Positions 4,279 through 53,335 of a stretch of 64,000 nt of DNA are shown in pieces. Numbering within the stretch: the stretch's first letter is position 1; each line of letters starts with the position of its first letter. This DNA is from Phaeosaccion multiseriatum (Eukaryota; Protista; Ochrophyta, other classes). The stretch is from positions 5,146,001 to 5,210,000 of the forward strand of contig OZ218950.1 of NCBI GenBank assembly GCA_965112735.1, given 5' to 3'. Below the pieces are notes generated by a model. That model was given only the letters and a program-made list of their open reading frames with translations. It ran no database searches and was not told the origin of the DNA. The position numbers were made by a program, and so were the translations under genes.

Positions 4279-5943
4279 TTATGTCTTTAGCGGTTTCTTT
4301 TTCCTCCTCTCAGCCAGCTTGTCCTTGGCCGCTTGCGCCTTGGCCCCGTAGTTCTTGTCCTTCTGCTGCTGCGCCAGAGTCATGGCCACCACCTGGATCA
4401 CGTCCTCGTCCATCATAACGTGCGTTAGGCCCACTCGCTGCGGAGAGTGCTTGGTGCTCCGGCCCCACACCAGGGCGTAGTTGAAGGCGCTGAGCATCTC
4501 CTTGCTCACGTGCTCGCAAGCCGCCTTGACAGTAAGGCCACTCCTCTCCGTGGACAGCACCACCGGCTCCTCGAAGCTTGGCGGGGCGCCCTTCTTCTTT
4601 GTGAATATCCGCACTAGCCCCATGTAGTCCCACATCTTGGCGAGTAGTCTGTCAAGGTTTAGCTTCATGTGCACGCTGACTACGGTGCTATCCGGCTCTC
4701 TAGCCAGCTTGTCCATATCCTCCACCGTAATCATATCCACCTTGTTGTACACATAGAGGCACCGAATATACTTGCGATTGCCCTGGATCACGTCCACGAG
4801 CTCGTCGCTGTCAATGTCCTCTCGGATGAGTAGCTCGCAGTTGTGCACCTTGTACTCCTGCAGGACCCTCTTGACGGTGTTGGCCGGGTCATCCCCCAGT
4901 TTGGTCAGGGGGATACTGGAATTGAACTTGACCCCACCGGCCATCTTTTTCACAAAGGTCACATTCGGTGGCCGCTTGTTGAGCCGAAGGCCAACTGTCT
5001 CTAACTCTCGCTCTAAGATGGCCCGGTGGTTGTTCTTGCTGCCCTCCTTGGCCGCATCCAGCACCATGAGAATGAGGTCGGAGGACCTTGCCACCGCGAT
5101 TACTTCCCTCCCCCGCCCCTTGCCATATGCAGCTCCTTCGATGATTCCGGGTAAATCCAGCAGCTGGATGCGCGTGTCATTGTACAAAATATTTCCAGGG
5201 ATACCTGTGTGTGTGGGAGGGAGGGGTGCGGGGCTCTGAGTCAAACACCGATTCGACGCTGCTGTGAGTCCATTCATGAGCCATGTACGCGCCTCGCAGA
5301 GGGCCCGAGGATGAACATACATGTGAGGGTTGTGAATTCGTAGCCCGCTGCTGTGGACTCTGTTTCCGTGAGCTCCGAGAGAAGCGTGGACTTGCCCACC
5401 GAGGGAAAGCCAATCATCGCCACTCGACCGTCGCCGCTCCGTGACACCGCAAACCCCTGTAGGTAGGGATTAAAGTGCAGAGCCGTGGAAGACACATGAG
5501 CACTTGCCACTTCCAGAACAACCAAAGGAGCAACTCCATCTCTACTCCCAAGCTCTCCGAGTCGGAGGACGACGATCGTTCTGTTCGCCCCCCCCTCGCA
5601 CAACAAAACCCCGCTAAAAGCCTTTCGGCGCTCACTTATGTTGAGTAACAACTAGCCAATCTCCCTTCCCCCCTGCGGTCCACGCACCTCTCCGCCCCCT
5701 CCGCCCCCTGACGGAGCTACAAGCAACTCGTTTCTGAGCTTGGCTAAGCGGGCCTTGAGCATGCCCAGATGACCCTCTGTGGCCTTGTTCTTTTGCGTCC
5801 TGCATCCAGCAGAGCAATAGAGTGTTGACAGGAGAGGGAGGGTTATCAGCGCCGTGTATATGACTCCCCTTGCCCTTGAGCTGAGAAAATCCTTACCTCG
5901 ACATCTCCGTCTCAATCTCCTTGATGCGCTCGAGGATCCCCAT
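4279..5943 (-). CDS. DRG2: Developmentally regulated GTP-binding protein 2 (OBG-family GTPase, TGS domain), 4 exons
   Basis: [16 protein letters not shown]|[68 protein letters not shown]. Confidence 0.95.
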
Positions 5944-6327: not shown

Positions 6328-8133
6328 ATGGCCACTATGGACCCATTCAAAGCGGCCCAGCAGGCGGACCCGAAGGCGATAAAGGCGTACCTGTCTGCAG
6401 GAGGCTCCATCCTCGTCGGGGACCCCGAGTACGGAGCATTTCCTATCCACTGGGCTTGCCTGAGGAGCCGCTTGGAGACAGTTAAGCTGCTTCTGGAGGT
6501 GGGAGGGGCGAAGACGCTGGAAGCTCGGACCTTTACCGAGGGAACGCCTCTTGTGTGGGCGTGCATGGGCGGCGATGGAGATGATGCCAAGGACATCAGC
6601 AGAAGCAGCAGAAGCAGGAACAATCGGGGGGTGGTTGACTACCTGCTCTGGGCTGGCGCGAATCATGCAGCGACTACCAAAGGAGGAGGGACTGCGCTTC
6701 ATCACGCGGCCTCTTACGGTCACCCTGGGGCGGTGGCGTCCCTTCTGCAAGCAGGGGCGGACTGCTTCGCCCTCGACTGTCGTGGAGACGGACCAGGGGA
6801 CTACTTTGACGAATCGGTGGGGACGAGCACCAAAGCACACATAATAGGCATGATTGAAGAGGCTCAGCAGGAGCAGCAGGCCACGCGTGATTGGCTGCGA
6901 GGTAGAGGACCCGTGCCCGTGCTGCCGGGAGGGAAGAAGGGGGGGGTGCCGGAGATGACGGGGGAGAGGGGAGGGGGCTCTTCGTCGACACTCAGTTCCT
7001 TGGCCTCCTCGTCTTCCAGTGCTCCAGCAGCAGTATCAACAGCAGGCGATGGCCAGGAGCAAACGCAGCAGCAACAAGGGCGTAGGAGGACTTTCGGTCA
7101 AGGGACGGCGGGGACAGATGCGGCCGATGGTTTGCTCGCGTCTCTGTCTCTGTCCGGCCGTAATCCCTTCAACCCCGTCAGAGCTTCCAATCCCTTCGTT
7201 GTCCCCGAGGGGGGGGATCGTGCAGGCAGCCCCAGCAGCAGCCTCGGCAGCAGTGTAGAGAGCGTGGTGGGAAGCTCAATGAGAGGAGGTGCGGGGGGGG
7301 GGCGCCTCTGTGGAAGGAGTGGTCCGGACGGCGGGACTAGTGTGTGCACTACACCCCCGGCTTCTGTCACTCCCGACAACTCTTCCGAATGCTCCCCACA
7401 ACCAGGCCCCAAGCTTGCAGAGAGGATGAAGGCGGTAGACACAGAGCAAGAGGGTGGTCTACCCGCGGCAAAAGAGCAAGAGCCAGGACATGGTGTGGAT
7501 TTGGGGAACATGTGGAAGGCCTCGGAGGAACAGGACGAGGCCACGCGCCAAGCCCTACACTCCGTGCGGGAGAAGGACGAGGCCATAGCTGCTTTGCAGG
7601 CGGACAGGGAGGGCGCTCTGGACAAGCTGTTCTCCCACTGGGGCAGCTCTGAAGCGGCACTGCGCCACCTGGTGCAGGGAATGGCCACGCGCTGCGAGAT
7701 GCTGCAGAGCGAGCTGTCGGCCAGGAACAGGCAAGTCGCGCATCTGAAGGAGAGGCTTGCAGTGTTTGAGGCACGCACGGATGAGGAGGAGGGGGAGGAG
7801 GGCGAGGAGGAGGCCTTACCGTGGCTCGGTGATGCTGGTGGTGGTGCCTGCGGTGAGGCGAGGAAAGGAGCACGAGGAGAGCCCGACGATTGCCCATCAA
7901 AGAGTTGGCAGCGCAGCGAAGGGGGTCTTTGGCCCCTGCAGGATACAGACGACCCGAGAGGGGACGTGGAGGGATGTGGAGAAGACGTGCCGCAGCAGGA
8001 GGGGCAGCTTCAGCGCCAGCATGCAGGAAGTGGTCAAGAGAGGCAGCAAGAGGGGCAGGACCAGGGGAAGCATACGGGAAGTGGCCTAGAGAGCCTGCCC
8101 ATGTTTTACCAAATGCTGGCCAAGTCGAGATGA
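6328..8133 (+). CDS. Ankyrin-repeat protein with low-complexity linker and coiled coil (601 aa, single exon)
   Basis: FPIHWACLRSRLETVKLLLE, GTPLVWAC, GTALHHAASYGHPGAVASLLQAGAD. Two NPF motifs and a C-terminal coiled coil. Confidence 0.85.
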   Translation: MATMDPFKAAQQADPKAIKAYLSAGGSILVGDPEYGAFPIHWACLRSRLETVKLLLEVGGAKTLEARTFTEGTPLVWACMGGDGDDAKDISRSSRSRNNRGVVDYLLWAGANHAATTKGGGTALHHAASYGHPGAVASLLQAGADCFALDCRGDGPGDYFDESVGTSTKAHIIGMIEEAQQEQQATRDWLRGRGPVPVLPGGKKGGVPEMTGERGGGSSSTLSSLASSSSSAPAAVSTAGDGQEQTQQQQGRRRTFGQGTAGTDAADGLLASLSLSGRNPFNPVRASNPFVVPEGGDRAGSPSSSLGSSVESVVGSSMRGGAGGGRLCGRSGPDGGTSVCTTPPASVTPDNSSECSPQPGPKLAERMKAVDTEQEGGLPAAKEQEPGHGVDLGNMWKASEEQDEATRQALHSVREKDEAIAALQADREGALDKLFSHWGSSEAALRHLVQGMATRCEMLQSELSARNRQVAHLKERLAVFEARTDEEEGEEGEEEALPWLGDAGGGACGEARKGARGEPDDCPSKSWQRSEGGLWPLQDTDDPRGDVEGCGEDVPQQEGQLQRQHAGSGQERQQEGQDQGKHTGSGLESLPMFYQMLAKSR

Positions 8134-11926: not shown

Positions 11927-12780
11927 ATGGAGGCGGCCCCTGTTTATGCGTCTCTTGCTCGGAAAGAAAGAAGCGTAGAGTGTGCTTCCCCCAGACGCTC
12001 GGACTGTCCTGATCTCGCTGTCGAGTCAGAAGGAGCGACATCGCCTCAAGAGGAGGCAGCCGAAGGTGGAACGGTCTGGGAGAGAAGGAGGCGGTGGATA
12101 TTGAGCGAGTGTAGCGGAGCCCTTGGTGATGTGGGGAGCTTTCTTCCCATCGTGACCGCACTGGCGAGCTCCGGTCAGATCAACATCACTGCGGTACTGT
12201 TCTACTCGGGGCTGTACAACGTGCTCACAGGTGAGCAGACCAGACGCTCGAGTACTCCTGCATGCAAGACCCCTCGCTCAGTGAGTTGTTGGTTACCTTT
12301 CTCGGCGTGACTGCAGGGTTGGCATTCGGGGTGCCGCTTCCTGTGCAGCCCATGCACACCATATCCGCGGTGGCCATTGTCGAGTCTCTGAGCTCGAGCG
12401 AGATTAGCGCGGCGGGCATTGTCATTGGAGTCATCGTCGGCGCGCTCGGAGTCTCGGGCCTTATCTCCTTCTTCACTCGACTCGTGCCCAGGGACATTGT
12501 GCGCGGTATTCAGGTAGGCAAATGTCAGTCAGAGGCGAGCCGCTCCCCTCCCTCTGAGCGTATGCTCTTGACGAAGTTTATTGTGTTGCTTGCCCGCCGA
12601 CAGCTCGCTCTAGGACTGCGGCTCATGTCCAAGGGACTCGGCCCGGACTATGCGTGGCGAAAAGTGTCGCACGGGGGGGGAGGGGGTGATGAGTCCACAT
12701 TGTGGTGGGGCTACGACAGCGTCCTGACAGCGCTGCTGTGCGGGCTGCTGACTCTCTGGGTGTGGGGCAAGAAGCAGCAG

Positions 12781-12814
<34 letters not shown>

Positions 12815-13841
12815 GCCTCGACAACCAGCGATATCTACACCCGTCCTCTGGGGAAGGTGGCTCCTGCCAGGCGTTGGGGGGGCGAGTCCTGGTGAGGGAA
12901 CGGAAGGAAGGCCGAGACTGTGCCCCCATTCCCGTGGCTCTCTTGCTCTTCATGCTGGGAATGGTTCTGTCCCTCCTCAACACTCGAGGCGCGGACGACC
13001 AAAGCGAAGCGTCTGCATCCGCTGAGAAGCTCCGGGCCCTCTGGAGCAGCTCCGAACACTTCCTTCCTGGGCCAACGATCCCGTCACGGCGCGACTTTGT
13101 GACTGGCACCATGCAGGCGGCTCTGCCCCAGCTGCCCCTCACCTGCCTCAACTCGGTCCTCGCAGTCACTAGTCTGGTCAAGGAGCTGTACCCATCCTCA
13201 TCAAGTGGGCAGGGACGCCGCGCGGCGAACGCTCGCCTGTTGGCTCTGTCCATCGGAGGCTTTAACGCTGCGTGTTGCGGCTTTGGTCACTTCCCATCGT
13301 GCCATGGAGCGGGCGGCTTGGCCGCGCAGCACGCCTTTGGCGCACGGGGGGGAACTTCCATGGTGCTACTCGGCCTCTTCAAGGTGCGCAAGTGTGCGTG
13401 AGGGGGGGGGGGCAATGTCCCAGCCCGCTCTCTCACGACACTTTCTCACGCCCCTCTCCACCCACTCAGGTCTTGTTCGCCGTTGCGTTCGGTGCGGCTC
13501 TGCTCCCCGTCCTCGAGTCCTTTCCTCGCTCCATCCTGGGGGTGCTGCTGTGCGTCAGCGGGCTCGAGCTTGCAATCGTCAGCTTGCGGGAGACTGTCGC
13601 CCCCGTCATACACGGTGTGCAGAGGGACTACACTCTCCTCTTACTGACTGCCGCCGCATGCCTCGTTTACAACACGGGCCTGGGGTTCGTGGGCGGAGGG
13701 CTTGCAGCAGTGGTGCTGAGGCTGGCGGCAGCCAAGAGAGACGCTAGAAGCAGCAGCAGCGGCAGCGAGGGCCCTCGGGAAGGCCCTGAAGACGAGAGGG
13801 GCCGAGCCTCCTCCTTTCCTGGGCAACTTCACGCGAACTGA
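11927..13841 (+). CDS. MOT1: Molybdate transporter MOT1 family, 4 exons, with poly-Q insertion
   Basis: SECSGALGDVGSFLP, FGVPLPVQPMHTISAVAI, QLPLTCLNSVLAV, FPSCHGAGGLAAQHAFGARGG. Confidence 0.92.
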
Positions 13842-14483: not shown

Positions 14484-16691
14484 ATGCATCGCCAGGGTTT
14501 CGTAAGCGTGCTTGGGTTTTTCCTTGCTGCGCTGCGTCGTGGTGTTCTTGCTGGTGTCTGCCCGCCGGAACAGACAGTTCCAGACAATGACAGCGAGGGT
14601 TTGCAACTCGTGGCACGCTTTGATCCTTGTGCGGAGGAGGGTCTTCTTAGCCAAGTATTCGTTGTACTCACGATTAGACACGAGAACGTGGGGGACTTGA
14701 CTTTGAGTGTGCAGAGTCCAGCAGGTACGACTGTCGTTCTGAGCGCGAACAATGGAGGGAGTGGAGCAAACTATGACGGAACATACTTTGCTGATTTTGC
14801 GCTTACACCAATCACGGAGGGGGAGCCTCCCTTCAATGATTTTTTCCTGCCGGAAGAGCCTTTGAGCGCCTTCAATGGACAAGATAGGGAGGGCGACTGG
14901 ACCGTTGCCATCATCGATAGTAATGAAGGGGTTACAGGATGCGTGGATAGAATAACTGTTCTTGCTTCGTGCCCTCGCATAAGTTGCGTGTTGGAATGCG
15001 GAACACAAGTGCCGCGCTGGGGGGGCTGTGCGTGTGACGCGTCTTGCTCTACAGAAGGGACGTGCTGTGACGATTACGAGAATATTTGCGGTACGGGGCC
15101 GCCTGCTCCGCAAGTAACGGCGCCGCCTACTCCTGAAGATACGCCTGCCCCTATTGCCGAGGTTGAGGCAACGGCGGCGCCTATTCTTGAGGATACACCG
15201 GCCCCTGTGGCCCAGGCGGAACCAACGGTGGCCCCCACTCCTGAGGAAACACCTGCCCCTGTCGCCGAGGAGGACACACCACCGCCTACTGCTGAGGACA
15301 CACCTGCCCCTGTTGCTGAGGCAGAACCAACGGCGGCGCCCACTCCTGAGGATACGCCTGCTCCTGTGGCCCAGGAGGATACACCAGCGCCTACTGCTGA
15401 GGACACACCACCGCCTACTGCTGAGGACACACCACCGCCTACTGCTGAGGAGACACCACCGCCTACTGTTGAGGACACACCACCGCCTACTGCTGAGGAC
15501 ACACCACCGCCAGTTGCTGCAACTACGCCTCCTCCTACACCTGCCCCGGTTGTCGAGGGGGGGACACCAGCGCCGGTCGCTGAAACAACGCCTGCCCCTG
15601 TTGCTGGGGAATCCGCTGATCCGACACCGACAGCAACAGTCGCAACAACGCCAGCACCCGCCCCCTTCACCGCCCCCCCAACTCCAGCTGGAACGGTGCC
15701 TCCCACAGCCGTCGATCGAGAGGTCGGGGGTACTGACCCCGTGGAGCTGGACTTTGACGGCAGCGCTGATGGCGAGCTTTTGGATACCACCTCCTCTGTG
15801 GAGCTTTTGGATCGCTTCGAGGACGCCTACGGGGTGACTTTCAGCACAGGAGTGACCAGAGTAGTGGACTCGGACAACGGGGGAGACCCTTCCGATGGAA
15901 GTGTTGCCAACCTGCCGGCAGGTACCAGCGCACTTCTATTCACAGAACCGGAGTCATACATGACCGTTCCGGGTGGAATTGAGGACGGGGCAGCATTCTT
16001 TTACTCCTCCTCGGCGGAAGTGACTGTGGCAGCTTTCTCGGAAGAGAGTGACGTTGGAGCTGGCGAGCGAAAAGGAAGAAGGCTGTGGATAGGGGGCAGG
16101 CGGTTGGCAGAGGTGGGAAGCATCACGCTCCCAGCAAAGCACGACGAAGACTGCCCTGCAGATGGAGACGACGACGGGGAGTACTGCAACTGGTGAGTAG
16201 CAGCAGAAGGGGCCTTTTTTTGTTCGTTTGTTTGTATCTGGGGAGGGAGCTGTTTTTAACCCAAGAGCCCAATGCTGTGCACACGCCTTCCCTCTCTTCA
16301 ATCTCAGGACCGAGGCGGCCGTGCCTGTCTCCCGAACCGCTGAAGCGCTGACGTTCAGCACGAGCGAGAGAGCTTTGTACCTGAACAGGCTCACCCTTGG
16401 AAGCGTGTCACTCGGATCTACCAGCAGTCCGGGACGAACGGACTCTTCCGGTGGCGGCGGAGGCGGGAATGACATGCTCTTCGTGGGTCTCCTCGTCGCG
16501 GGGGTGGCCCTTTGCCTGTGCCTGGGCTGTCTGTATGTTGGAAGGAAGAGGCTCAAGAAGAACCGTGAGCAGGAGGCGTCAGAGGAGGATGAAGAGGAGG
16601 ACATTTACCCCGTGGGGCCTGCTGACCTTTTTGCAGAGTCCGGACACATGGCACATGGAAGCCCTTCGGCGTTGCACCCTGCTCCAGACCA

Positions 16692-16726
<35 letters not shown>

Positions 16727-16818
16727 TGGTGGTCAATGGGCTTCTCCCTGTGGCCGAGTATAGCGGGAGCGAGTGCAGCTCAAATACTGGGCATTCTGCT
16801 TCCACCCCGTACCACCTT

Positions 16819-16868
<50 letters not shown>

Positions 16869-17178
16869 GCAACAACAGCAACAGTTACCTCTGACGCCTC
16901 GGCAGCAGCACTACGGCGCGGCCCGCCTCATGGCCCCGCCTCAACCCCCTTCTGCCTCGGGTCCAATGGGTGGCAAGACGGACCCCGGCCAAGGAGTGCC
17001 CAGCCAAACCGCCAGTGCCAGTCCAGATGGGGCGGCAGGGGAAGCAGCATCATCCCCAGAGTTCTACTCTCGAGTCTCCGCTCCGGCGGGTGGGCAGCGG
17101 GCCCAGTTCGGAGAGGACGAGGTCGAAATGGAGCCCCCCAGTTACGATGCTCTCTTCCTCAACTCCACCCACAACTGA
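14484..17178 (+). CDS. Type I membrane surface protein A: signal peptide, P-domain, somatomedin-B domain, Pro/Thr stalk, PEP-CTERM-protein-like domain, TM, poly-Q/PPSY tail
   Basis: IRHENVGDLTLSVQSPAGTTVVL...FNGQDREGDWTVAIID (P-domain); CACDASCSTEGTCCDDYENIC (SMB); TPPPTAED repeats; TM LFVGLLVAGVALCLCLGCLYVG. One intron at about 16193-16307. Confidence 0.8.
15110..15620 (+). repeat. Coding minisatellite (24-bp EDTPPPTA unit and longer variants)
   Basis: GAGGACACACCACCGCCTACTGCT repeated in tandem. Confidence 0.85.
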
Positions 17179-17812
17179 ATCAATGGATATGCACGTGGGA
17201 GGAGTCCGCCTGTCGAGAAGGTCTTTTGATTGGACGCCCTTTTGGGGCCTCGAGTGAATTTTCTGAGTTTGAACAGACGCACACGCACGTCTATAGACAT
17301 TTTGAACATGGGTCATGGGTTTTGGGCAAGGCAAAGTCAGGAACGAGGCGGCGGAGGGAGGCGCTGCAGGAACCGATCAAGCACCGCAACACAGCACTGT
17401 CGGAGGAGGAGGCGAAGGGCGACATCGGATGGCGCAGAGGAATGAATGTGCCTTTCATACGCTCGTCGTAGACTAGGCAGGTGGTGCGACCCTCTTCCGT
17501 TTTTCTGGGTCTGGGCCGTCAGCACACCTGCTTGTCTGCAGCGATGAGCCGCACTGCTCCATGGCTCTCTATGGAAGGGGACCCCTGTTAGAGGCTCAAC
17601 CTCACAGGGCAAAAGAGGTCGTGTTGTGTAAGGGGAAAACACGACATGCACCGGATATACATCTGTTTTTTTTTCCCACACAAGTGTACATGACTCCCCA
17701 ATCACTTCGCAAATGAGATCAAATGACATGAAACTAAAATTGCCGCCAGTCACACTCCGCCCTGATAGAAAAGTGGGGGAAGCTGGCAGCAGCAGCAGCA
17801 GCAGCTAAAGAG

Positions 17813-18474
17813 ATGATCTCTGTGGCTGCTGCTGTTGTGGCTGCGGTTGTTTCTTGCTCAGCCTTTTCGTTGGCCGCTGCGCAGTCCCTGTGTACCTATC
17901 TCATACCTGACGATGGCGACACCCCTCTCCAACTCTCTTCGCATTTCTCTGCCTGTAGAGAGGGCGGGGGCATCGGCACGGTCATGCTCGCCGGCAACAT
18001 CATTCATCCCAGCGTGGAGGAGCTGAGCATCAGCATCGAGAGTCCCGACGGGACGACGGTGTCTGTGCTGGAAGCCGGATCCATCAGCGGGAAAGACATG
18101 GACTCCTTTGTCTTCTTCGATGGGGCCTCTTCCTTCATCGATAGCGGAGCATCTGCGCCCTACTCTGGATTCTTCAAGCCATCAACGCCATTCCAAGAGG
18201 CCTTCCGGGGAGAGGAGGGAACAGGCCATTGGACTGTGACCTTGCTCGACGGTAGCCCAGGCAACATGGGCTGCATCGTGGACATGACTCTTGCGCGGAT
18301 CTGCTCAAAGTCGAGCCGTGCTCGCGTGCCTATTCCCGACGGTGGCGAGGCTATGCTGATGAGCGAGTTTGAGGGGTGCTCGGATGGGCGACCGGTGCGT
18401 TATCAATGTCAGGAGAGAACCCCGCTGTTCTTGTGTCTTGATAAGCAAACCTACCTGATAACCTCTTCTCTCCC

Positions 18475-18511
<37 letters not shown>

Positions 18512-21137
18512 TATGCACACACAGGTTGGCCCTGTCTACCTCTCTCTGGACATTGATCACCCCCGAGTGGCGGACTTGGAAGTCTCTCTGAGCAGTCCAG
18601 ATGGCACTGAGGTTTTGGTCTTCAGCGAAGGGAGTGGAAGCGGGAGCGACTTGGAAGGTGAGTAGCGAGCATCCACAAGTGATGTTTGAATGTTTCATTC
18701 AGGAGCGAGCAGCTAACACATTAAACCATTACCCCCCCCCCCCTTGCCTTATCCCGCCTGCCCGAAGGCACTTTCTTTCTGGACGACGCATCGGCCTCGC
18801 TAGAGTCGGGGACGAGCCCGTTTGCGGGGCCTTTCCAGCCAGAAGATTCATTCGGCGCTTTTCGGGGGAAAGAGAGTGGCGGCCAATGGAGGACAAAGGT
18901 AGTGGACACGAGAGCTCGCAACACGGGTGCCATTCTGGACTGGCACTTATTGCGCTTCTGCACTCTGGGGAGAGAGGCAAGCGGGGGTCCCTCTCCCACC
19001 CCCGCGCCAACAACGCCAGCACCCACGGTCTCGCCAGCAACACCCACGCCTACTGCCGCACCCACAGCTCCACCGACAGCAGCACCAACAGCTGTAGTAG
19101 GCACCAGAAGCCCCACGGCTGTTGCAGCTCCTCCTACAGCAGCACCACCAACAGCGGCACCTCCCAACCCAACCCCAACTGAGGCACCGACTGCGTCTCC
19201 GACTGCTGCGTTTCCGACCGAGGTGAGTTCCTCTACTTGCTCCCTTTGTGCCATCATGCTGTACCTCAAGTACCTGGCTTCCCTTGCTTTGTTTCCCATT
19301 CCTCAGGCGCCCTCGGTTGCTCCTACTGAAGCCCCGACCGCCCCCCCTCCAACCAGAGCACCCACTTTGCCTCCCACAGTGCGCCCCTCCTCACCAACGC
19401 CGACTGTGGAGGGACGTGGAGACGAATCAACTGCACCGACGCCGACAGCAACAGTCGCAACAACGCCAGCACCCGCCCCCGTCACCGCCGCCCCAACTCC
19501 AGCTGGAACGGTGCCTCCCACAGCCGTCGATCGAGAGGTCGGGGGTACTGACCCTGTGGAGCTGGACTTTGACGGCAGCGCTGATGGCGAGCTTTTGGAT
19601 ACCACCTCCTCTGTGGAGCTTTTGGATCGCTTCGAGGATGCGTACGGCGTGACTTTCAGCACAGGAGTGACCAGAGTAGTGGGGGGGAAAGGAGGGGAGC
19701 CTTCCGATGGAAGCGTGAGCATGGCCAATCTGCCGGCCGGCACAAGCGCTCTGTTGATGAAGAGACCTGTGTCGTTCATGGAGGTGGAGCAAGGCTTCGA
19801 CACGGGGGCTGCCTTTTACTACTCTTCTTCGGTCGATGTCACGGTGACGGCTTACTCGGATAGCGGCGGCGCTGCAAGAGCTCCGGTGGAGCCGACTGGC
19901 TTGGGGAGAAGGGTGCTACAAGTGGGCGGCCGGAGGCTGGCAGAGGTCAGTAGCGCATCCCTCCCCGCGCAGCACAACGATGACTGCCCAACGGATGGCG
20001 AAGACGGAGAGTTCTGCAACTGGTGAGTTGAATGAGTTGAAGTGGGCCTGCTTCTTAGTTGGTTTGTTCACGTGTTGCGCCCTCCCTCCGCCCGCCCGCT
20101 CTGGCGTCTGCCGCTGTTTTCTCGCTCTCCTCAGGACCGAGGCCCGGTTGGCAGTGAGCGAGGCGGTGACCGTGCTGGCGTTTGATTCGGGAACCTCCGC
20201 CAACGCACTCCTTGTCGATAGGCTGACACTTGGCGCCGCCTCAGTCGCGAGCGACGACGACAACGACGATGAAGCAAACGAAGACAAAGAAGAAGAGAAA
20301 GACAAAGACGATGCGACAACCGTAGGAGGAGGAGAGGGAGGTGACGACAACAGCCGCCCGCTGTTGATCGTCATCGCGTGCCTGGCTGCAACGCTGGTGG
20401 TCGGGGGTTTTGTCGGCGCCGTGCATGCCACAAAGTCCAAGAGAGGCACTTTCTTTCCACCGACGACAGACGATGATGGAGGAGAGGGGACCTTAACGTT
20501 GGCTGTGGGGCGCCCGCAGTGCGACGATGAAGGAGGTCCACATCAGTGGAGGAGTACAGCTTCCTCGGCCTTTGAGAGCGGACACCACCCTCCGTACGAG
20601 TACGGCATGCGCAACGAGAGCCAACCCCACCCGGCATACGGGTATGTCACCGGGTACGACAGCCAGCCCCGCCCTCCCTACGGGTATGGCATGGTGGCGA
20701 TCCCCCCGGCGTCGGCCTACCCATCCGCGTCTTTCTCCTCGGCGGTCCCCTCCTTCCGCGGCGGCCCCGCTTCTTCCCTCTCCACCAACAGCAGCATGCC
20801 GTACTCACAACAACGGCCCATCTTGGGCACGCTCCAGCGGCCACATGAGCGGCTCCGCGTGGAGGGCAGAGTCCTGTCGCCTCCCGAGCCGCCGTCGCTG
20901 CCAGTCTCTGTCAGCGGAAAGAGAGACCTTGCTGACACGGCCAGCGCCGCCAGGCTGGCTGCCGAAGCAGCTGCTGCTTCGGGGGGTGGCGGTGATGGGA
21001 GAGGGGCAAGTGCTCACGGCGATGCTCGAGGCGGCGGAGGGGATCACGACTCATTGCCCTCTCGTCTGCCCACCTCTCGGCCCTCTAGCCCGCCTCCGCC
21101 CACGTACGATGACATGTTCAACACCACCACCGGCTGA
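17813..21137 (+). CDS. Type I membrane surface protein B (paralog of A): signal peptide, two P-domains, Pro/Thr stalk, same PEP-CTERM-protein-like domain, TM, PPTY tail, 5 exons
   Basis: IIHPSVEELSISIESPDGTTV...GTGHWTVTLLD and LDIDHPRVADLEVSLSSPDGTEV...GGQWRTKVVD. Shares an intron position within CNW with gene A. Confidence 0.8.
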
Positions 21138-29027: not shown

Positions 29028-32000
29028 TGGTTCTCTTCTGTTGGAGGGAATGGGAAGGGGGATATGATGCACCCTTTGGGCCTTGCAGCTCTCCGCCGCC
29101 GCTCCATTCCTTGTGCCTGCATGCCTTTCTCGTCTTTCTCAGCAACTGATCAGCGTGCTCTCCCCTCCTTCCCCTCTGTCCGTCCCCTTCTGCGCTACCC
29201 TGCTAACAGCTTGCTGGGCAAGATCCTCTTCTTGACGCACTTTGTGGCCTGCGCGTGGTGGTACTTGGCCTCTGGCTGTGGGGGTGGCCACCTGACCTCG
29301 GATACCTCCGCGGAGTTCGGAACGAAATTGTGGTTCCAGTGTGGGACGGGAAGTCATGCCTCCGCCTACCTGTCCGCCTTCTACTGGGGAATCGTAACCA
29401 TGATGACTGTGGGGTATGGAGACATCAACCCGGAGCCAGCCATTGTTCCGTGGCTCTTCACCATTTTGGTGCAGGTGCGATGGATGCTTTGCTGAGCGGC
29501 GCGTTGCTGCGCTTGGCTTTTCCTTCTTTCCCTGCCCCTACTATACTGCCACCCCCGCCGATGACGACAAAGCTCCCCAAGCCTGGCCAGCGCCCCCCCC
29601 CTCACCCCTTCCCTCCCCCCTCCCCCATCCACTCTGTCCATCCCTTCGCCAGTGCATCGGTTGCTGCACCTTCGGCTTCATCCTCGCCGTTGTAACCGAA
29701 GTCGCAGAGGCCATGTCTGCAGAGGACCCGGAGACCGTCGCTATCGCACAGGCCAAGAAATTCATTCGGAAATGCGACCTCCGCCCCTCCATGGCGGCCA
29801 GGGTCAAAGCCCACCTCCTCTACGCGCTGCAAAACCCCGGACCGCAGGAGGGCAGGCAGGCGATGGATGCCTTGTCGCATGGGCTGGGGAAGGATGTGCT
29901 AACGGACGTTTGCGGGGCGCGGCTGACTCTCCTACAGAGTCTGCCCCTTCTTGCCCACGTGGAGGGCGATGAGACGATGCTCATAGAGATTGCTGTGCGG
30001 CTACGGCCTTGCTTTTTGCTCCAAGGCGAGCAGATCATTCGCAAGGGCATGATGGCCGCACAGGTGTACTTTGTGGTGAAAGGCTTGTGCTTCGGAGTCG
30101 CAGCCGACCCTACTATTGCAGGGGCAGGGGGCAGGGGCATAGGGGTGGGGGTGGCGCTGGGGAAGGAGGAGCATGGCCAGCAGAAGCGTCATCACGATGG
30201 CGAAAGGGCCGCACTCACTTTTGCCACTGCCCCATCTACCCCGGTGGGGGTCTGCTCCTCTCCCGGTGTGAGCACCGCTGTATCGCCTACCCCTCCTGCT
30301 GCGGATGCGGCGCGATCAGACGGTCCGTGGACGAGCTCCGAGGATATGGGAGAGGGAGGGGGCGGGAGTGGGGTGGTCCGTGGTGGGTGTTGCGGGAGCA
30401 AGCAGATATCGGTTCTGCTGCCATTGGGAGGGCTGGAGCCGCTGGAGCCACAGGTGCCGGTGAGACCACTCGCCCCCTTGCCTCAACAAGGGGAGGGCAA
30501 GGACGGACCGAAAGCAGACAACATGGTCTCCGCAATAGAGCAGGGCGAGGGGTATGGGTCCGGGGACACCCCCCCCAAGGGCAAGGGGAGTGGAGAGGCA
30601 GAGATGACAGGCAACAAGGCCGACACGCCCACCCAGAAAACGGCGGGCGTCACCATTCTCCCGGCCTTGACGCAGAGACGCCCCGCCTCCTCAGCAGCCA
30701 AAGGTGGTGCTAAGGCGAGTAAAGAGGATAAGGGCACTGCTGAAGAAGCAGGAGAACGCACCTCCAAGAACGTTCTCCAGGCGCTGTACTTTGACGGGGC
30801 AGAGGTGGGGCTAGCGGAGGCGGCGCTGAATCAACGCATGGCCCACAACGTTCTGGCAACGGTGCCCTGCGATCTCATGTTCATCGATGCACCGAGTCTT
30901 GTGGATGTGCTGCGCAACGTGTCTAGAGGCCGCCTTCGGAGCCTACACGACGCCTTTGTGAAGCAGCTGGACGATTATCGCAAGGCAGGGCTGGCGGAGT
31001 CGGAGGACATCGACATGGCTTACGCCCCAGAACAGCAGCACTACGGGCAGGAGCCGGACGGGTTGGGGGGCAGCCAGCGGGTGAGGAGGAAGCGAAGTCG
31101 AGTAAGTGGGAGTGTGTTCCAGACCCTGCGGAACAAGAGTAGCTTCTTCGGTGGGGGCACGGGGAGGAGGCAGGAGAAGCAGGGGAGAGGGAAGGTAGGC
31201 GACGACCACCACAACGACCACGCCACCGCCATCGCAACGGCTGTCGCTGAGCACAACGAGCGCGAGCAACGGAAACTGGAGCTGAAACAGGAAAAGGGGC
31301 GGCGGCAGCAGTTGCAGAGGGAGAAGAAGAAGCAGCAGCGGGATCGGCAGTTAGAAGAAAGGGGGGGGGAGGAGCAGCAGCAGGCGGAAGAGGATACGGG
31401 AGCAGGGAATCCACTGCTTTTAGGACAAGTGACGTCTAGCGATGAGGACATCGCTAAAGAAGGCGAAGGAAATAGTCATAGTGGGGGGCGGGCACCAGAC
31501 ACAGAGGAGGAAGAGAACGAAGACGACCAACAACGGAAGGGCGAGAGAGACGACGACGATGATGATGATGATGATGAAGGTAGCCGCAGCGGCTCTGAAG
31601 CAGATCCAGACGATGACATGCAATTCTGCAGGATCTCACCAGGCGTAACCATCAACGGCAAAGTGGCCTGTGCCGAGACACTGCGATGCCTCATGCCGCA
31701 GGGGCTGGCCAGGACCAGGCAGTACCTGGTGTCGGGCGCGTGGAAGCTGCCAAACGACCAACAAGGACCAGGGTCTGGGCGGGGGGGAAGGGGAGGGAGA
31801 GGAGGAGGGGAAGGGGGAAGCTTCACATCGGACGGTGGCGACGGAGTCGGGGCAGGTGAGTGAAGCAACACATGTGGTGTGTCGTGTTGTTGTGTGCGTT
31901 TCAACATTGTTGACTTACTGCGCTACTCTTTCTTTCAATTCCTTCTCTGCCTGGCTACCGCTACTGATTTGTGGCTTTGCTCGAGCCACAGGCGAACATT

Positions 32001-35636: not shown

Positions 35637-37997
35637 ATTGTATATATTCTTTGCCAAGGTTGGAGGGGTGGGAATGTTCTTCCTAACCAAAGGTGAAGCC
35701 ATTCTGTGCCTGCCCGTGGAAGAAGAGGTGAGGCAGGAAGGAAGGAAAGAAAGAGAAGAGAAGTTTTTAGGAGGCCCGACGGACGCAGAGCGCGGAGTCG
35801 ACTTGTTTTGGTGTACCTCGCTCACTCTCTCGTAGGCTGGTAACCCCCCCTAACCCCTAGCTCCTACCCGAACACGCCCCTTGTCCCCCCACCGTGCCGT
35901 GCCCGCCTCATCTCATCCCTCTCTCTCATCAGGCGCTACCCCCTCATGGGTCAGATCTTAGAGAGCTGTCTCGTCAACAACATTCGTGAGGCGGTGCGCG
36001 ACATGGACAAGATGTGTTACAAGAAGAGGGACAAGAGCAAGGGCATGAAGAGCAGTAGCAGCAAGGGTAGTGGCAGTGGGAAGGGCAAGAGGGAGGGCAA
36101 GGGCGGGGATATGGGGAAGCAGGATTCCAGGAAGAGGGGCAGGTCCCCAAGCCCGCCCTCTTCGTCCCGTTCCTCCTGCTCTTCCTCTTCCTCCCGTTCC
36201 TCCTCGTGTTCCTCCTCCTCCTCCTGGTCGTCTTCGTCTAGCTCCTCGTCTGGAAGTGGCACAAGCGATAGCGACAGCGACGATGGCAGACGCGCGGCAA
36301 GGCAAAGGCGGAGGAGCGCAGGGAACAAGGAGAAAGATCCAAATGATGTCGATCCGACTCCGGCAGTGACCACAGCCGCTACTACAGGTGGCCGCAATTT
36401 GGGTTTGGTCAGCAGCTTGAGCAGGAGGAAGAACCTGACAAAGACGAAGAGAAGAAAGACCGTGCAAGTGTCCGCTAAGGAGGATGACATCGGCGACCAA
36501 GGCAGCGTTGAGGCGGGAGGCCTTGGCCAACACGATCTGAGCTACTCGGATTTGAATGACCTGCAGCACTTTGGAGAATTCATCACGCAGCATGCGGTCA
36601 CTACCATCTTGGGTATGGAAGTGAAGATTAGTCTCTCGAGTATGATCGGGGGACCTGGGGCAGGGGCTCGGCGCTCTTTGGAGAGAGCCCGGATTGCGAG
36701 CAAGCTCATTAAGCGAGCGAGACAGGCCCAGGCGCACGGCGGGAAGGGATTAGGGCATGGGAAGCCCGTGTCGAGCTTCCTCATGGAGCGGCTCAGGAAG
36801 AAGGCCCAAGAGGCCAAACAGAGACTGGAAGAGGCCCAGGAGAAGGCACGAGAAGATGGGGTGGCGTACGATGGCCCGGTGCCCAGGCATGGCTCTGTGG
36901 TGGTGGCTGGTCCGGACGACGCGCCTGCTTCTCCTGCGCCGGCGAAGAAGCCTACTGCCAGTCCGACAGCATCAGCAGCCAGCAGCAGCAGTCTGCCCAC
37001 CTCTGGTCCGACGCGCAGCAGCAGTAGTGTGCCTGTGTCTGATGGCTCCGTCGTGGCACAGTCTGCCAGTCAGTCTGCCAGTCAGTCTGCCAGTCAGTCT
37101 GCCAGTCAGTCTGCCAGTCAGTCTGGCAATCAGTCTGGCAGTCAGTCTGGCAATCAGTCTGCCAGCCAGTCTGCCAGTCAGTCTGTCAGTCAGTCTGGCG
37201 GGGAATCAGAAGCGCATGGCGGTCCCCACCGCCATCACCACCACCACCATCGTCCGCATCACGAGGGGGCGTCTCCCGATGACCACCACCGCCACCACCA
37301 CCACCACGACCACCACCATGGTCACCAATCACCACACCACCACCGCCACCACCACCACCACCACCGTCATCACCGCGAGGCTAAGCCTGTGGTGACTTCG
37401 GGGTTTTTCAAGGAACAACCGCTACCGCTCATTGCCTCGAACTTGCCACCGTTGATCGAAGTCGAGAAGAAGACACCGCAGCAGCCGACTGCAACGCAAC
37501 TGCAAGGGGAAGGAGCCAAGGCAGGAGGCGCAGTGGTGACGAAAGGCTCTTCCACGACGTCGACGACCGACGACTCGGAACCGGTGTGGACGGGCCTGGG
37601 CACCGGGACAAGCTCGACGGGTTGGAGGCGGGTGGGGCATCTCAAGATTGTTCCTTCCTTCGTGCCGACAGGGGCCGCAATGTCGGAGATTATAGCAGGG
37701 TACATTCACGATTGGTTGGTGAAAGGGTTCATCGACGGAAAGATTCAGGAGCTCTTTCGGAGGTGTGGGGCGTTTCATTTCGTGCCGGCGGAGGACGACG
37801 ACGAGGAGGAGGAGAAGAATAAGAAGGAGGAGGGAAAAAAGAAGAAGAAGGAGGAGGAGGAGCTGAGGAATAAGGGGGCCTCTGTTTCCCTCTCGGCTCG
37901 TGCGTCAGAGGAGAGTGAGCATATTGGGAGAAAATCAGGTTTCCAGCGCCAGATCACCATGCGGAGACAAAAAAGCGTTCTCGGGACGTTATCTTGA
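27794..37997 (+). CDS. Two-repeat (2x 6TM + CNBD) EAG/CNG-like K+ channel, many exons. The junction to the last large exon (about 35930-37997) is uncertain
   Basis: Two sets of YLKGWF..DL.ST.P, S4 (RAMRLFRLAKL; RIVRLVRLLKLFRILK), pores TMMTVGYGDI (about 29400) and TLTT|VGYGDI (33930/34278), and CNBD-like VYFVVKG and MFFLTKGE. Confidence 0.8.
35470..35635. repeat. Long (TC)n microsatellite in intron
   Basis: About 155 bp of near-perfect TC repeats followed by (TG)n. Confidence 0.95.
37059..37375 (+). repeat. Coding 12-bp SQSA tandem repeat followed by a poly-His tract
   Basis: CAGTCTGCCAGT repeated about 11 times, then (CAC)n blocks. Confidence 0.9.
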
Positions 37998-43600: not shown

Positions 43601-46600
43601 AGTAGTGGTAGTAACGGAACGGGGGAAGTGGCCCAACTCAAGGGACACACACATCAAAAGCCTGGCCTCTGCTTGGCTTTGGCTTTGAGCCCCCCGCCCA
43701 GCCAATAGTTGGCGGGGATCGAACCACCAATCGACGCACCTCGGTTAGGGCGGCGTTCCAATTGGCGCAGTTGAGGAGGTCCACCCTCTTGCAGCAGTCC
43801 TGCAGGAACTTTGACTCCATCTTGAAGGCGCGGATCGTCGCCAAACCAAGGGTGGCCTCTCCCAGCAGAGAGGTCAGGGGCGTGGCGGTGCTGGCTTGCT
43901 ATAGGAAGGAGGGGTAGTAGTTGTAGCAGTAGTTGTAGGAGGAGGAAAGAAGGAACTGTGAGGTATCAGTTAGCTGCAGTTAGCTACGGCGAGAGGGAGG
44001 GAGAGAGAGCATTAATAGAGTTAGCGGTTCTAGCTGCTGAAGAACACGTGGGCACAGGTGGGTCAATTGAGAGAGGAGAGGGAGACCAGAGGAAGAGGGA
44101 GAGATGAATAGAGGTAACAACTCTCACGTAATCTCAAGGAACCCCACACAACCTCACGTAAACGCACGAGTCTTACGTACCAAGCTCTTGACCCCTATGG
44201 CCGCCGTCATCGACACCCACAGCAGTGTCGCGAAGAGGACGAGGAGGCTCACCACCGCCACTACGAAGATGGCAGAGGACTCCACCCGACCGCTGATAAA
44301 CAGCAGCACCACGAACACGCTGGACAGGTGGCAGCAGATGGAGGCAGGAGGACAGGTCCGATGGCAGCAGACAGCATACGGGAGAGGTGAGGTGAGGTGA
44401 GGTGATGGCAGCAGATTGAAAGGGGAGGGTGGAGACGTTTGAATAGCGGTGGGTGGATACAGGTATAGCTATAGCCCACCCCTCCGACTTGTCTGTACAT
44501 GACCGGGCTACCTGCCGGCAGCTACTGTACACAAAGCTACACCGGCCTTTGTGACGCGGCAGTCCCTTGGGCCGGTACAACCCTCAGCCGCTACCTTAAA
44601 CTCCAAAACAGGCCTTGAATCTGAACAAAATAAGTAGATTTTCACACCCCATTCGCTCATTCTAGCAGCCAGCCAGTCAGCCAGTCAGCCAGGCAGTCAG
44701 TCATTCATTAACTCAGTCAATCAGTCTCCAGGTACTCTCAAGCTTGCCTGCCGGCAGGGCTACTCACCTGAGGGTGCATGCGGCCAAATTCAAAGAGCCG
44801 CGCAGGGAGAAAACAAAGTCCCTATCCATGATCTCCAAGTCGATGGCGAAGCGGTTGAGGATACGCCCATGAGGAGTGTGCTCAAACCACGCCATTGGTG
44901 CCCGCACCAACCCTTCCACCATGCGATTGAACAGCCTCCGCTGGCTACGGAGGAGGTTGACACTTGCCAAGAGACCCTGGATGAAGTACAAGACAAAGCC
45001 CAACAAGCAGAACCCAACGTAGAGCCGGCAGAAGAGGGCTTCCTTTGCCGATTGTCCTGCGGCGTTGGCCTTGACAAATTCGCCGAGAGTGTATGCGATC
45101 ACTGCGGGTGCGGGGGTCGGGGGTGTATGTCAATGAATTGGTGTGAGTGATTGCGATCACTGCGGCGGGTGCTGAGCGGGGGGGAGGCCAAAGGCAGGAG
45201 CACACGAAGCGAGTTGTGTGTGTGTGTGCGTGTGTGTGTGTGCGTGTGTGTGTGTGTGTCGTGTGTGCGTGTGTATGTGTGTGTGTTTCCTGTGCCGTTA
45301 GAGGTCTTGAGGAGGGCGGTGTTCCGCTCGGTTTGTGTCCCATACAGCAGACACCCCCTTCCACCACGGCCATCACCACCACCACCACCACCAACACCAC
45401 CGCTGTCTCCCCCCAGCCCCCCCCCTCCGTCCCCACCACCACCACCGCCATTGACTGCCATCCCACCACCACCATTGGCTGTCATCCCACCATCGCCATT
45501 GGCTGCCATCCCCCCACTGCTGACCTGTATGGTTGGACGTTAAAATAATCTGTATGACGATGGCAGGCAGCACGTAGGTAAGCCACCCCATGTACCCGAG
45601 GAAGGTCTTGTAGTTCTTCAGCCGGCTCGAGCCCGTTCCATGCATCTTGCCTTCGCCCCCCAGACCCTCGTCTCTGTATGCCTTGGTCACGTCTTCCTGC
45701 AAACTCAAACTCTGTTGACTTATGCACGAGCCGATGGAATTCCGATGACTTATGTACGAGCTGATGGAGTCGCGGTACTCCATAATGCCCCCCCCATCGT
45801 CGTCTCCTTCGTCTTCGTCTCCTCCTCCCCCTTCTTCTCCTCTCTCGAGCAAGTCTGCCAGCGCGGAGCCCGACACGGCTAGAAGCTGTCTCGGCCGCCC
45901 CTGCTCTCTGACGGTGCCATCCTTTGACATTACGAGCAACTCATCGGCGTACCTACGGGAGGGAGCGTGCGTGGGTGCGTGCGTGCAGGTGCGTGGGCGC
46001 GAGGTCCACCAATGTCCAACACGAAGCAAGCCCAAGGCCGTTCGTACTGTATCGGTATGCCGTGCGCTTATCCCGCCTGCCTGCCCCCCCCTCCCCCTTT
46101 CTCGCTCTCTGTGCGTGCGTGTGTGTGTGCGTGTGTGTGTCTGTTTCCCCTTCTCTCCCTCTTTCTCTGTTGTGGCTGGCCTCTCTATTCTCTCACCCTC
46201 CACACACACACACACGCACACACCCATCCACACGCACACACATTCATTGACACACGCACACACATTCATTGACACACGCACACACTCACGTTTTTGATAC
46301 CTGCATTCATGACATATTCACATAACACCGTACCTTGCAGCTTTGGCGACGCTGTGTGTGGCCATGATGACCGTCTTGCCCCTGCCAACAAGCGTCTCCA
46401 TCACACACCTCTCCATGAGGGCGTCAGCCACATGCGAGTCTACGGCAGAGAGCACGTCATCCAGCAGCACCACATCCGCGTCATCGTACACTGCTCTCGC
46501 CAGTGACACGCGCTGCCTCTGACCGCCACTGAGAAAGAGAAAGAGGGAGGGGAGAGAGAGAGGGAGAGGGGAAGAGGGAGAGATAGGAGAGAGAGAGGGA

Positions 46601-52600: not shown

Positions 52601-53335
52601 TGCACAACCCACAGACAGCAGAGTGATCACGGCACATCCGATCCAAAGGGAACTTGTTCGTCTGTCATCTTCTTCCTGCCACTCCAAATAGGAGAGCCAC
52701 ATGGAGTTGGCGGCGCTCAGCAAGAAGATCCCAACCAAACGAAATAGCATGATGAGGCGGAGGGCCCCGCCTCGTCCGCTGGTGGCGCCGCGTTGCCTGT
52801 ACCCATAGTTTGTTGGCTGGCCCAGGAGGAGGAGGACCGTCCCGTACACGAGGGCGAGGCTCAGATGAGCCCACTTCCTCCTGGAGTCGTCCGAGGACAC
52901 AACTGAGGCGCCAAAGAGAGAGGCATGCGCCACCATGAGCAGAAAAGTCATGCCTTCCATGACGAAACGCAAGGACCTCGACGGAAGCAGGTACAGGTCC
53001 TGGTGCGCCTCTCCTCCTGGGAGTGTTCTCGGAGTCGGCACCCTGTCATCATCTTCTGGGGGGGGCACGCGCCCCTCGGCCTCGCCTCCTGCTCGTCCTG
53101 CTCCATTTTGCCCATCGGACAACTGGAGCCCGCCCAATAGCCGTTTGTCTCCTCCTCCTCCTCCTCCTCCTCCTCCTCCATCCCCAGCAGCATCACCGCC
53201 TTTCTCAGTGTCATCTCCAGGCTTTCTCCGCGAAGCCGAAAGACACTCACGCGCCGACGAGTACAGAAAGAGGGCAAGGGTGGAGCACAATATGGCCAGG
53301 GAGAGGATGAAGACATCAGGATGGGTGGACGGCAT
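40652..53335 (-). CDS. ABCC/MRP-type full ABC transporter, about 20 or more exons
   Basis: NBD1 ICGPTGCG|[30 protein letters not shown]|[27 protein letters not shown]2 [17 protein letters not shown]2 [62 protein letters not shown]. Confidence 0.93.

Follow-up and report, generated by a model that had tools for sequence, protein, structure and literature searches.

A domain of bacterial PEP-CTERM proteins in two tandem genes for putative surface receptors of Phaeosaccion multiseriatum

Introduction

How does a domain that is otherwise met in exported proteins of bacterial envelopes come to stand, split by an intron, in two predicted membrane proteins of a protist? The question is raised by a stretch of 64,000 nucleotides from Phaeosaccion multiseriatum (contig OZ218950.1; "the window" hereafter is this whole stretch), in which two genes, here called A (14484-17178) and B (17813-21137), lie in tandem on the + strand with 635 nt between them and encode proteins built around a shared domain of ~185 amino acids (aa). 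An earlier note on this DNA, made from the letters without database searches, had likened the domain to bacterial PEP-CTERM exoproteins and had proposed that a bacterial envelope domain was grafted into eukaryotic receptor scaffolds. In the computational analysis presented here the observation is confirmed and the interpretation is supported. The reading preferred, with a probability of about 0.6, is that a domain of bacterial envelope proteins was gained by transfer and became part of type I adhesins or receptors of the cell surface, which probably bind glycans.

The shared domain and its bacterial relatives

The domain is present in the window in two copies only. Its exon-1 parts are 68-76% identical between A and B, a resemblance that cannot be due to chance given a tblastn E of 1e-60, and it starts ~420 residues into protein A, or more in protein B, behind one or two proprotein-convertase P-domains and a stalk (Table 1). 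For the window, searches and fold predictions used single-exon sequences as reference throughout. A full HMMER scan of 1.84e9 protein representatives with a reporting limit of E<=1e-3 returned four matches only, all of bacterial type (E 1.4e-5 to 4.5e-4) and all with the same collinear motif series; no close relative and no self-match was among them. Word-index searches were blank, both with candidates of 86-273 aa for the domain by itself and with candidates of 322-1024 aa for the domain within the gene A open reading frame (ORF).

A profile seeded with the four matches gathered at least 544 protein clusters of ~210-240 aa, most with PF07589 and a few with PF18203 in its place; where the clusters are named, it is as PEP-CTERM or PEPxxWA-CTERM sorting domain-containing proteins. 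With each bacterial species represented by one genome, a scan yielded 358 matches, the best 79 loci of which span at least eight phyla; Zoogloea, Massilia, Phenylobacterium, sphingomonads, Alteromonas, Acidobacteriota, Planctomycetota, Verrucomicrobiota and Nitrospirota are represented among the bacterial matches. When the window copies were compared by hhalign with 39 bacterial members, 29 of which match TIGR02595, the alignment covered 127 columns with a probability of 98.7% and an E of 1.6e-16. The exon-2 pieces, which lay outside the hhalign query, aligned weakly (E 0.011-0.068) and in the predicted register, at columns 165-196, with exon 1 ending at column 160. Profile comparison thus establishes the shared domain as a homologue of the N-terminal cargo domain in bacterial envelope proteins of the PEP-CTERM (exosortase-sorted) kind. 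These proteins of ~220 aa form a large family without a name and include P0003 (240 aa), in which the C-terminal PEP-CTERM segment scores above the Pfam cut-off.

The likeness extends from one end of the domain to the other. Genes A and B and the bacterial family have in common the motif order F-E/D-G, YG-V/I-S/T-FS, IDxDxGG, N-x-P, GF-x-TG-x-x-F-x-YS, C...G...C-N-W-T and D/R-I/L-T-F/L-G, and of the 47 positions whose conservation in bacteria reaches at least 85%, each window copy retains 25, among them both Cys. The motifs that the earlier note had read from the domain are present as quoted in both copies, and the motif string that it had given for bacteria is nearly word for word the consensus of the 39 bacterial members. 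It had staked its case on significant similarity to bacterial PEP-CTERM proteins, and that similarity was found. Its description of the domain as widespread in bacteria and uncharacterised also holds, as neither Pfam nor NCBIfam has a model that covers it in the bacterial members, and scans of all exon products with both collections gave no match on the shared domain.

The E-values of the full scan (1e-5 to 5e-4) and an exon-2 part that is not significant by itself might suggest that unrelated beta-sandwich domains have come to look alike by chance or convergence. Against this stand the hhalign E over 127 columns, motifs that are collinear along the whole domain, a conserved Cys spacing and the correct register of the exon-2 part; the hhalign result effectively refutes the idea.

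Nevertheless, taken strictly, proteins A and B fall outside the PEP-CTERM family, since they have no sorting signal: exon-2 products gave no match to PF07589 or TIGR02595 at E<=1, and the hhalign alignment ends before the PEP-CTERM columns. Bacterial PEP-CTERM proteins (for example P0003, P0065 and P0078) contain a homologous domain of ~170-185 aa with the same Cys pair and, like A and B, place it just outside a single transmembrane helix that is followed by basic residues, but they consist only of signal peptide, domain and PEP-CTERM. In A and B the PEP-CTERM motif is missing, P-domains and a stalk (and, in A, a somatomedin-B (SMB) domain) precede the shared domain, and there are in addition an Arg/Gly-rich insert of 17-24 residues in both copies, a cytoplasmic tail of 200-230 aa and an intron. 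Choice-of-anchor models (e.g. PF20597) were not matched in Pfam/NCBIfam scans by the window pieces or by the bacterial members, nor were carbohydrate-binding module (CBM) models of Pfam at E<=1, and neither the window profile nor the bacterial profile found anything meaningful in sequence searches of the PDB.

A common plan for both proteins

Both proteins follow the order of signal-like N-terminus, P-domain(s) (one plus SMB in A, two in B), Pro/Thr-rich stalk, shared domain, transmembrane helix and tail. This is the module order that the earlier note had proposed, and it is borne out by exon-by-exon gene models, Pfam, repeats and hydropathy. Each protein has a single hydrophobic N-terminal stretch and a single stretch of transmembrane grade with basic residues after it, as judged from Kyte-Doolittle hydropathy (19-residue window) and from reading of the sequence. 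The exon-by-exon check of both models found every intron of A and B to be GT..AG, 84-130 nt long and pyrimidine-rich at its 3' end; those of gene B measure 130, 110, 84 and 112 nt. The two halves of the second P-domain of gene B, in exons 2 and 3, match complementary parts of PF01483, which supports the intron between them. The stalk, rich in Pro, Thr, Ala and Glu in both genes, is long and probably O-glycosylated.

The P-domains recall the proprotein convertases furin and kexin, in so far as PF01483 is matched above the Pfam cut-off in both A and B. Unlike in those enzymes, however, they are N-terminal stand-alone modules: no Peptidase_S8 (subtilase catalytic domain) match was found by Pfam scan in any exon product, in agreement with the earlier note, and a P-domain comes directly after the signal-like segment. 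Since the catalytic domain is absent, A and B are not convertases; their beta-sandwich P-domains may, as the earlier note suggested, bind ligands. Gene A shares with vitronectin, ENPP and EndoU an eight-Cys SMB knot above the Pfam cut-off, its best PDB match being the SMB pair of EndoU (9ftw); in contrast to those proteins, its SMB is set among a P-domain, a stalk and the bacterial domain, and gene B has none. The searches made turned up no described family and no eukaryotic relative with this architecture, in line with the earlier note, which knew of no named family.

The tails are of low complexity and probably disordered, 200-230 residues long, and contain no signalling domain recognisable in Pfam scans. 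Tail A and tail B have no significant similarity by BLAST and cannot be aligned except at a terminal motif: by eye, both of these otherwise unrelated tails terminate in P-P-S/T-Y-D-x-L/M-F, 5 or 6 residues from the C-terminus.

Origin of the domain

Entry of the domain from bacteria is inferred from its distribution only: hundreds of bacterial species stand against one eukaryotic locus, and the full and metagenome scans revealed no eukaryotic relative. More precisely, eukaryotic relatives of the domain were found neither in the HMMER scan nor in the word-index searches, nor in a metagenome scan with peptide patterns specific to the window. After its arrival in this eukaryotic lineage the domain would have gained a spliceosomal intron, been fused behind modules of eukaryotic type and been duplicated.

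As the relatives found are bacterial only, the domain itself might be suspected of being bacterial contamination or an assembly chimera. In both A and B, however, it contains a GT..AG intron at the same codon and in the same phase, a phase-2 intron that splits the Trp codon of C-N-W after its second base; the next exon resumes with T-E-A, and splicing recreates the N-W-T of the bacterial consensus in both genes. Furthermore, the domain lies in one open frame with P-domain, SMB and stalk, and the identity of the window copies to any bacterial member is only 29-39%. The window has the character of eukaryotic nuclear DNA, with spliced genes and a guanine-cytosine (GC) content of ~0.58 throughout, the GC content of A and B equals that of the rest, and the flanking genes are eukaryotic on both sides. 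Contamination is excluded for practical purposes by four facts taken together, namely an intron in the domain, its fusion in frame with SMB and P-domains, a GC content like that of the window and eukaryotic flanking genes, and it is regarded as very improbable.

Predicted fold and putative function

The AlphaFold2 (AF2) model of the bacterial protein P0003, made with the family alignment, is a beta sandwich with an anchor helix (predicted local distance difference test, pLDDT, 81; predicted template modelling score, pTM, 0.73). Foldseek matched it to the CBM6 structure 1uxx (E 4e-5, target TM-score 0.60) and also to the gingipain cleaved-adhesin domain, to CBM4/11/29/61 and to MAM; overall, the matches to CBM and adhesin structures have E 4e-5 to 1e-3, target TM-scores of 0.5-0.6 and identities of 9-17%. 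The bacterial family member is therefore predicted to be a CBM6-like (galactose-binding-like) jelly roll. CBM6 modules and the gingipain cleaved-adhesin domain are extracellular binding modules; their likeness to the shared domain is one of predicted fold, seen for P0003, and differs from the sequence level, where no CBM model of Pfam was matched. Jelly-roll matches were confined to the bacterial member; the exon-1 piece of the window, modelled alone, had none.

On the basis of the CBM6-like predicted fold and the conserved Cys pair, we infer that the shared domain may bind glycan. The predicted membrane-proximal jelly roll of ~185 aa could bind either a polysaccharide of the cell's own matrix or wall or a bacterial exopolysaccharide (EPS). 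In view of a CBM-like fold, a Cys pair outside the cell, a position close to the membrane and a mucin-like stalk that bears further beta-sandwich modules, A and B are most likely surface adhesins or receptors for a polysaccharide, and they would act as such in the form of type I membrane glycoproteins. PPxY is a ligand of WW domains such as those of Nedd4-type ubiquitin ligases, and the C-terminal motif suggests turnover or internalisation of A and B through recruitment of such a ligase.

A different role is conceivable, in which A and B are sensors or structural anchors of the wall or matrix, like the fungal Wsc and Mid2 proteins, rather than ligand receptors or adhesins, and a rigid, glycosylated stalk relays mechanical stress from a matrix-embedded head to the tail. 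Both kinds of protein have a head domain, a Ser/Thr/Pro stalk, one transmembrane helix and a signalling tail, and polysaccharide of the cell's own making could anchor a CBM-like module; in A and B, however, the CBM-like domain adjoins the membrane instead of occupying the tip of the stalk, and the tails have no recognisable signalling domain. Such a role is considered unlikely.

A bolder version of the adhesin or receptor interpretation holds that a bacterial gene was captured whole, with cargo domain, anchor helix and basic stop-transfer residues, so that the eukaryotic transmembrane helix would descend from the PEP-CTERM helix and the receptor would still recognise bacterial EPS. The retained layout of domain, short linker, transmembrane helix and basic cluster fits such a capture, but Pfam, NCBIfam and hhalign comparisons of the exon-2 parts gave no sequence support for descent of the helix from PEP-CTERM, and the proposal is speculative and unlikely. 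If true, an exosortase substrate would have become the core of a eukaryotic type I receptor for sensing, adhering to or ingesting EPS-producing bacteria, with internalisation driven by PPxY.

Points that weigh against acquisition and glycan binding

Several observations count against the preferred reading, in which the domain was acquired from bacteria and serves in glycan-binding surface proteins. The best HMMER E of only 1e-5 is modest for a search of a single library. The window's own proteins are missing from the collections searched, where exact look-up of six of its ORFs recovered none, and relatives in sister species may likewise be unsampled. Nesting inside a bacterial clade is the usual proof of transfer, and it was not recovered for the eukaryotic pair in a tree of 96 sequences, in which the pair falls outside all sampled bacterial members on a branch of ~3.7 substitutions per site. 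The phylogeny that the earlier note had called for could be built with bacterial members, but it gives no donor clade, and none is named here because the pair sits on a long isolated branch.

With regard to function, Foldseek found no match for the AF2 model of the exon-1 piece of the window (pLDDT 73.7), presumably for want of the closing strands encoded by the next exon, and the fold of the domain is assigned from the bacterial member. The bacterial family is without a described function, and its gene neighbourhoods vary, the commonest neighbour being present at 10 of 79 loci, so that the genomic context offers no functional clue. The DxD of the IDxDxGG loop is kept in copy A and lost in copy B, so that A and B may bind different things. 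Finally, the PPxY link to turnover or internalisation is read from the motif alone, eight residues identified by eye.

The position of the eukaryotic pair outside all sampled bacterial sequences, and not within a clade of them, would also be expected if no transfer from bacteria had taken place, that is, if the domain were an ancient vertical inheritance lost or unsampled in other eukaryotes, or if it had moved from eukaryote to bacteria. The window's lineage is seemingly absent from protein collections, and nearby sampling may be poor. On the other side, a single eukaryotic locus is opposed to at least 544 clusters and to 358 matches in bacterial genomes, of which the best 79 loci belong to at least eight phyla; eukaryotic matches among the 1.84e9 representatives number zero, in bacteria several sorting systems carry the domain as a simple cargo that stands alone, and the long branch is consistent with faster change after fusion. 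A history without transfer from bacteria is accordingly judged unlikely.

Relation to known systems and wider meaning

The nearest conceptual precedent for A and B is provided by the Trailins of diatoms, adhesive trail proteins in which a transferred bacterial choice-of-anchor A surface domain is combined with regions rich in Pro, Thr and Ser (10.1101/2023.03.06.531300). In both cases a domain of sorted bacterial surface proteins (cargo of LPXTG, PEP-CTERM or type IX secretion systems) has been joined to Pro/Thr/Ser-rich regions. Trailins have no membrane anchor, and their domains nest within bacterial clades (10.1101/2023.03.06.531300). By contrast, A and B contain another domain, which does not match PF20597, they have a transmembrane helix and a tail, and no donor clade emerged from their tree. 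The pair would add to the Trailin precedent for eukaryotic adhesion or recognition proteins built from parts of bacterial surface proteins.

If the preferred reading is right, a cargo domain of the bacterial exosortase/PEP-CTERM system has become the module that is conserved best in a pair of eukaryotic membrane proteins. A domain family of hundreds of members, which has no name and no Pfam or NCBIfam model, is now defined by an alignment and a predicted CBM6-like fold, and with the eukaryotic pair its ligand could be sought in a second biological setting, independent of the first. Furthermore, stand-alone P-domains and SMB appear to serve as extracellular modules outside the convertase and vitronectin contexts of animals. 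The finding is a curiosity with a testable function rather than the answer to a long-standing question.

Paralogue history

Genes A and B are, by sequence divergence, old tandem paralogues, since synonymous substitutions per site (dS) are saturated (~1.7-2), identity between the P-domains is 35% and no alignment of the tails is possible. The figure of 35% refers to P-domain 1 of gene B against that of A; for the P-domains, nonsynonymous substitutions per site (dN) are 0.76 and dS is 2.0. In the shared domain outside a tract of ~240 bp, dN is 0.28 and dS 1.7, and on these estimates no part of the paralogues is under stronger constraint than the shared domain. The tract itself, which covers the end of the stalk and reaches ~45 residues into the shared domain, is, from its pattern of DNA identity, a recent gene conversion (Table 1).

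The bacterial family

Judged from the C-terminal signals of its members, the bacterial domain is cargo of several sorting systems, namely PEP-CTERM, PF18203 and, by eye, a GlyGly-CTERM-like type. The last of these ends was noticed in the long proteins P0001 (1075 aa) and P0004 (635 aa), and in P0001 it is Gly-rich, hydrophobic and basic. These two, listed with the loci L082 and L083, are the best-scoring relatives, long bacterial proteins of low-GC type in which the domain is N-terminal and accompanied by CarboxypepD_reg-like domains. The contigs of P0001 and P0003 are short metagenome pieces. Relatives of the domain that are 29-30% identical to the window copy are also encoded on two IMG/VR contigs with a viral classification (L080:1460-1858 and L081:5001-5294). 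Some bacterial loci (L055, L021 and L018) have two copies of the family gene within ~2 kb, so that local duplication has occurred in bacteria also. In the commonest group of bacterial neighbours, one example ORF is a CysA-type ABC ATPase.

The locus and its features

The features of both genes and of their surroundings are collected in Table 1. Across the window, genes are compactly spaced and gene content is protist-like; no Rfam family and no tRNA was found in it.

Table 1. Positions of genes A and B, their parts and neighbouring genes in the window
Feature	Position	Strand	Basis and remarks
Gene A exon 1	14484-16192	+	Signal-like N-terminus, P-domain, SMB, stalk, most of shared domain; ORF and first ATG; donor AAC TG|GTGAGT at 16193
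Gene A hydrophobic N-terminal segment, signal-peptide-like	14496-14558	+	Hydropathy maximum 1.68
Gene A proprotein-convertase P-domain	14649-14948	+	PF01483, E 7.5e-10, 39.2 bits (cut-off 21)
Gene A somatomedin-B domain	14982-15092	+	PF01033, E 4.7e-8, 33.7 bits (cut-off 23.1); 8 Cys in a 36-residue stretch
Gene A stalk, Pro/Thr/Ala/Glu-rich	15093-15734	+	Translation; tandem repeats 15116-15511 (Tandem Repeats Finder, TRF, periods 24, 54, 105 nt)
Gene A shared domain, exon-1 part	15741-16192	+	HMMER matches; hhalign 98.7%, E 1.6e-16
Gene A intron inside shared domain	16193-16307	+	115 nt, phase 2, GT..AG, pyrimidine tract
Gene A exon 2	16308-17178	+	End of shared domain, transmembrane helix, tail
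Gene A shared domain, exon-2 part	16308-16407	+	Ends ...RLTLG; profile columns 165-196, E 0.011
Gene A predicted transmembrane helix, then RKRLKK	16474-16542	+	Hydropathy maximum 2.73
Gene A predicted cytoplasmic tail, low-complexity	16543-17178	+	Acidic run, two poly-Q runs; ends PPSYDALF + 6 aa + stop
Gene B exon 1	17813-18394	+	Signal-like N-terminus 17813-17884 (hydropathy 2.22); P-domain 1 17978-18283 (PF01483, E 1.4e-6, 28.7 bits, cut-off 21)
Gene B exon 2	18525-18657	+	P-domain 2, first half: PF01483 positions 4-37, 28.6 bits (above cut-off)
Gene B exon 3	18768-19222	+	P-domain 2, second half: PF01483 positions 54-84, 18.3 bits (below cut-off), tblastn; then Pro/Thr stalk begins
Gene B exon 4	19307-20022	+	Stalk to 19549; shared domain, exon-1 part, 19556-20022
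Gene B intron in shared domain	20023-20134	+	112 nt, phase 2, same codon as in gene A
Gene B exon 5	20135-21137	+	End of shared domain, transmembrane helix, tail
Gene B shared domain, last part	20135-20234	+	Ends ...DRLTLG; profile columns 165-193, E 0.068
Gene B predicted transmembrane helix, after acidic linker, then KSKR	20361-20423	+	Hydropathy maximum 2.62
Gene B predicted cytoplasmic tail, Tyr/Pro/Gly-rich	20424-21137	+	Ends PPPPTYDDMF + 5 aa + stop
Gene-conversion tract (from DNA identity)	15640-15880 (A), 19455-19690 (B)	+	~240 bp, ~98% DNA identity; flanks 45-70%; 60-column windows 58, 59, 60, 50 of 60
MOT1-type molybdate transporter	12262-13841	+	~640 nt upstream of gene A
Neighbouring eukaryotic genes	4279-5322, 6328-8133, 62049-62972	-, +, +	DRG-type GTPase, ankyrin-repeat protein and cyclin, in this order

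Four long ORFs (330-815 aa) of the window are without a Pfam match, at 29416-31863 (+), 35946-37997 (+), 46481-47518 (-) and 52343-53335 (-); the first, second and fourth have no exact match in the protein collection, and the source genome is apparently either not annotated or missing from the collections. In the tail of gene A, CAG repeats at 16690-16725 and 16819-16884 encode the two poly-Q runs, and a weak Pfam match to TFIIA on the poly-Q was rejected as an artefact of low complexity. Intron 1 of gene B consists mostly of a (CT)n(CA)n microsatellite (18463-18520).

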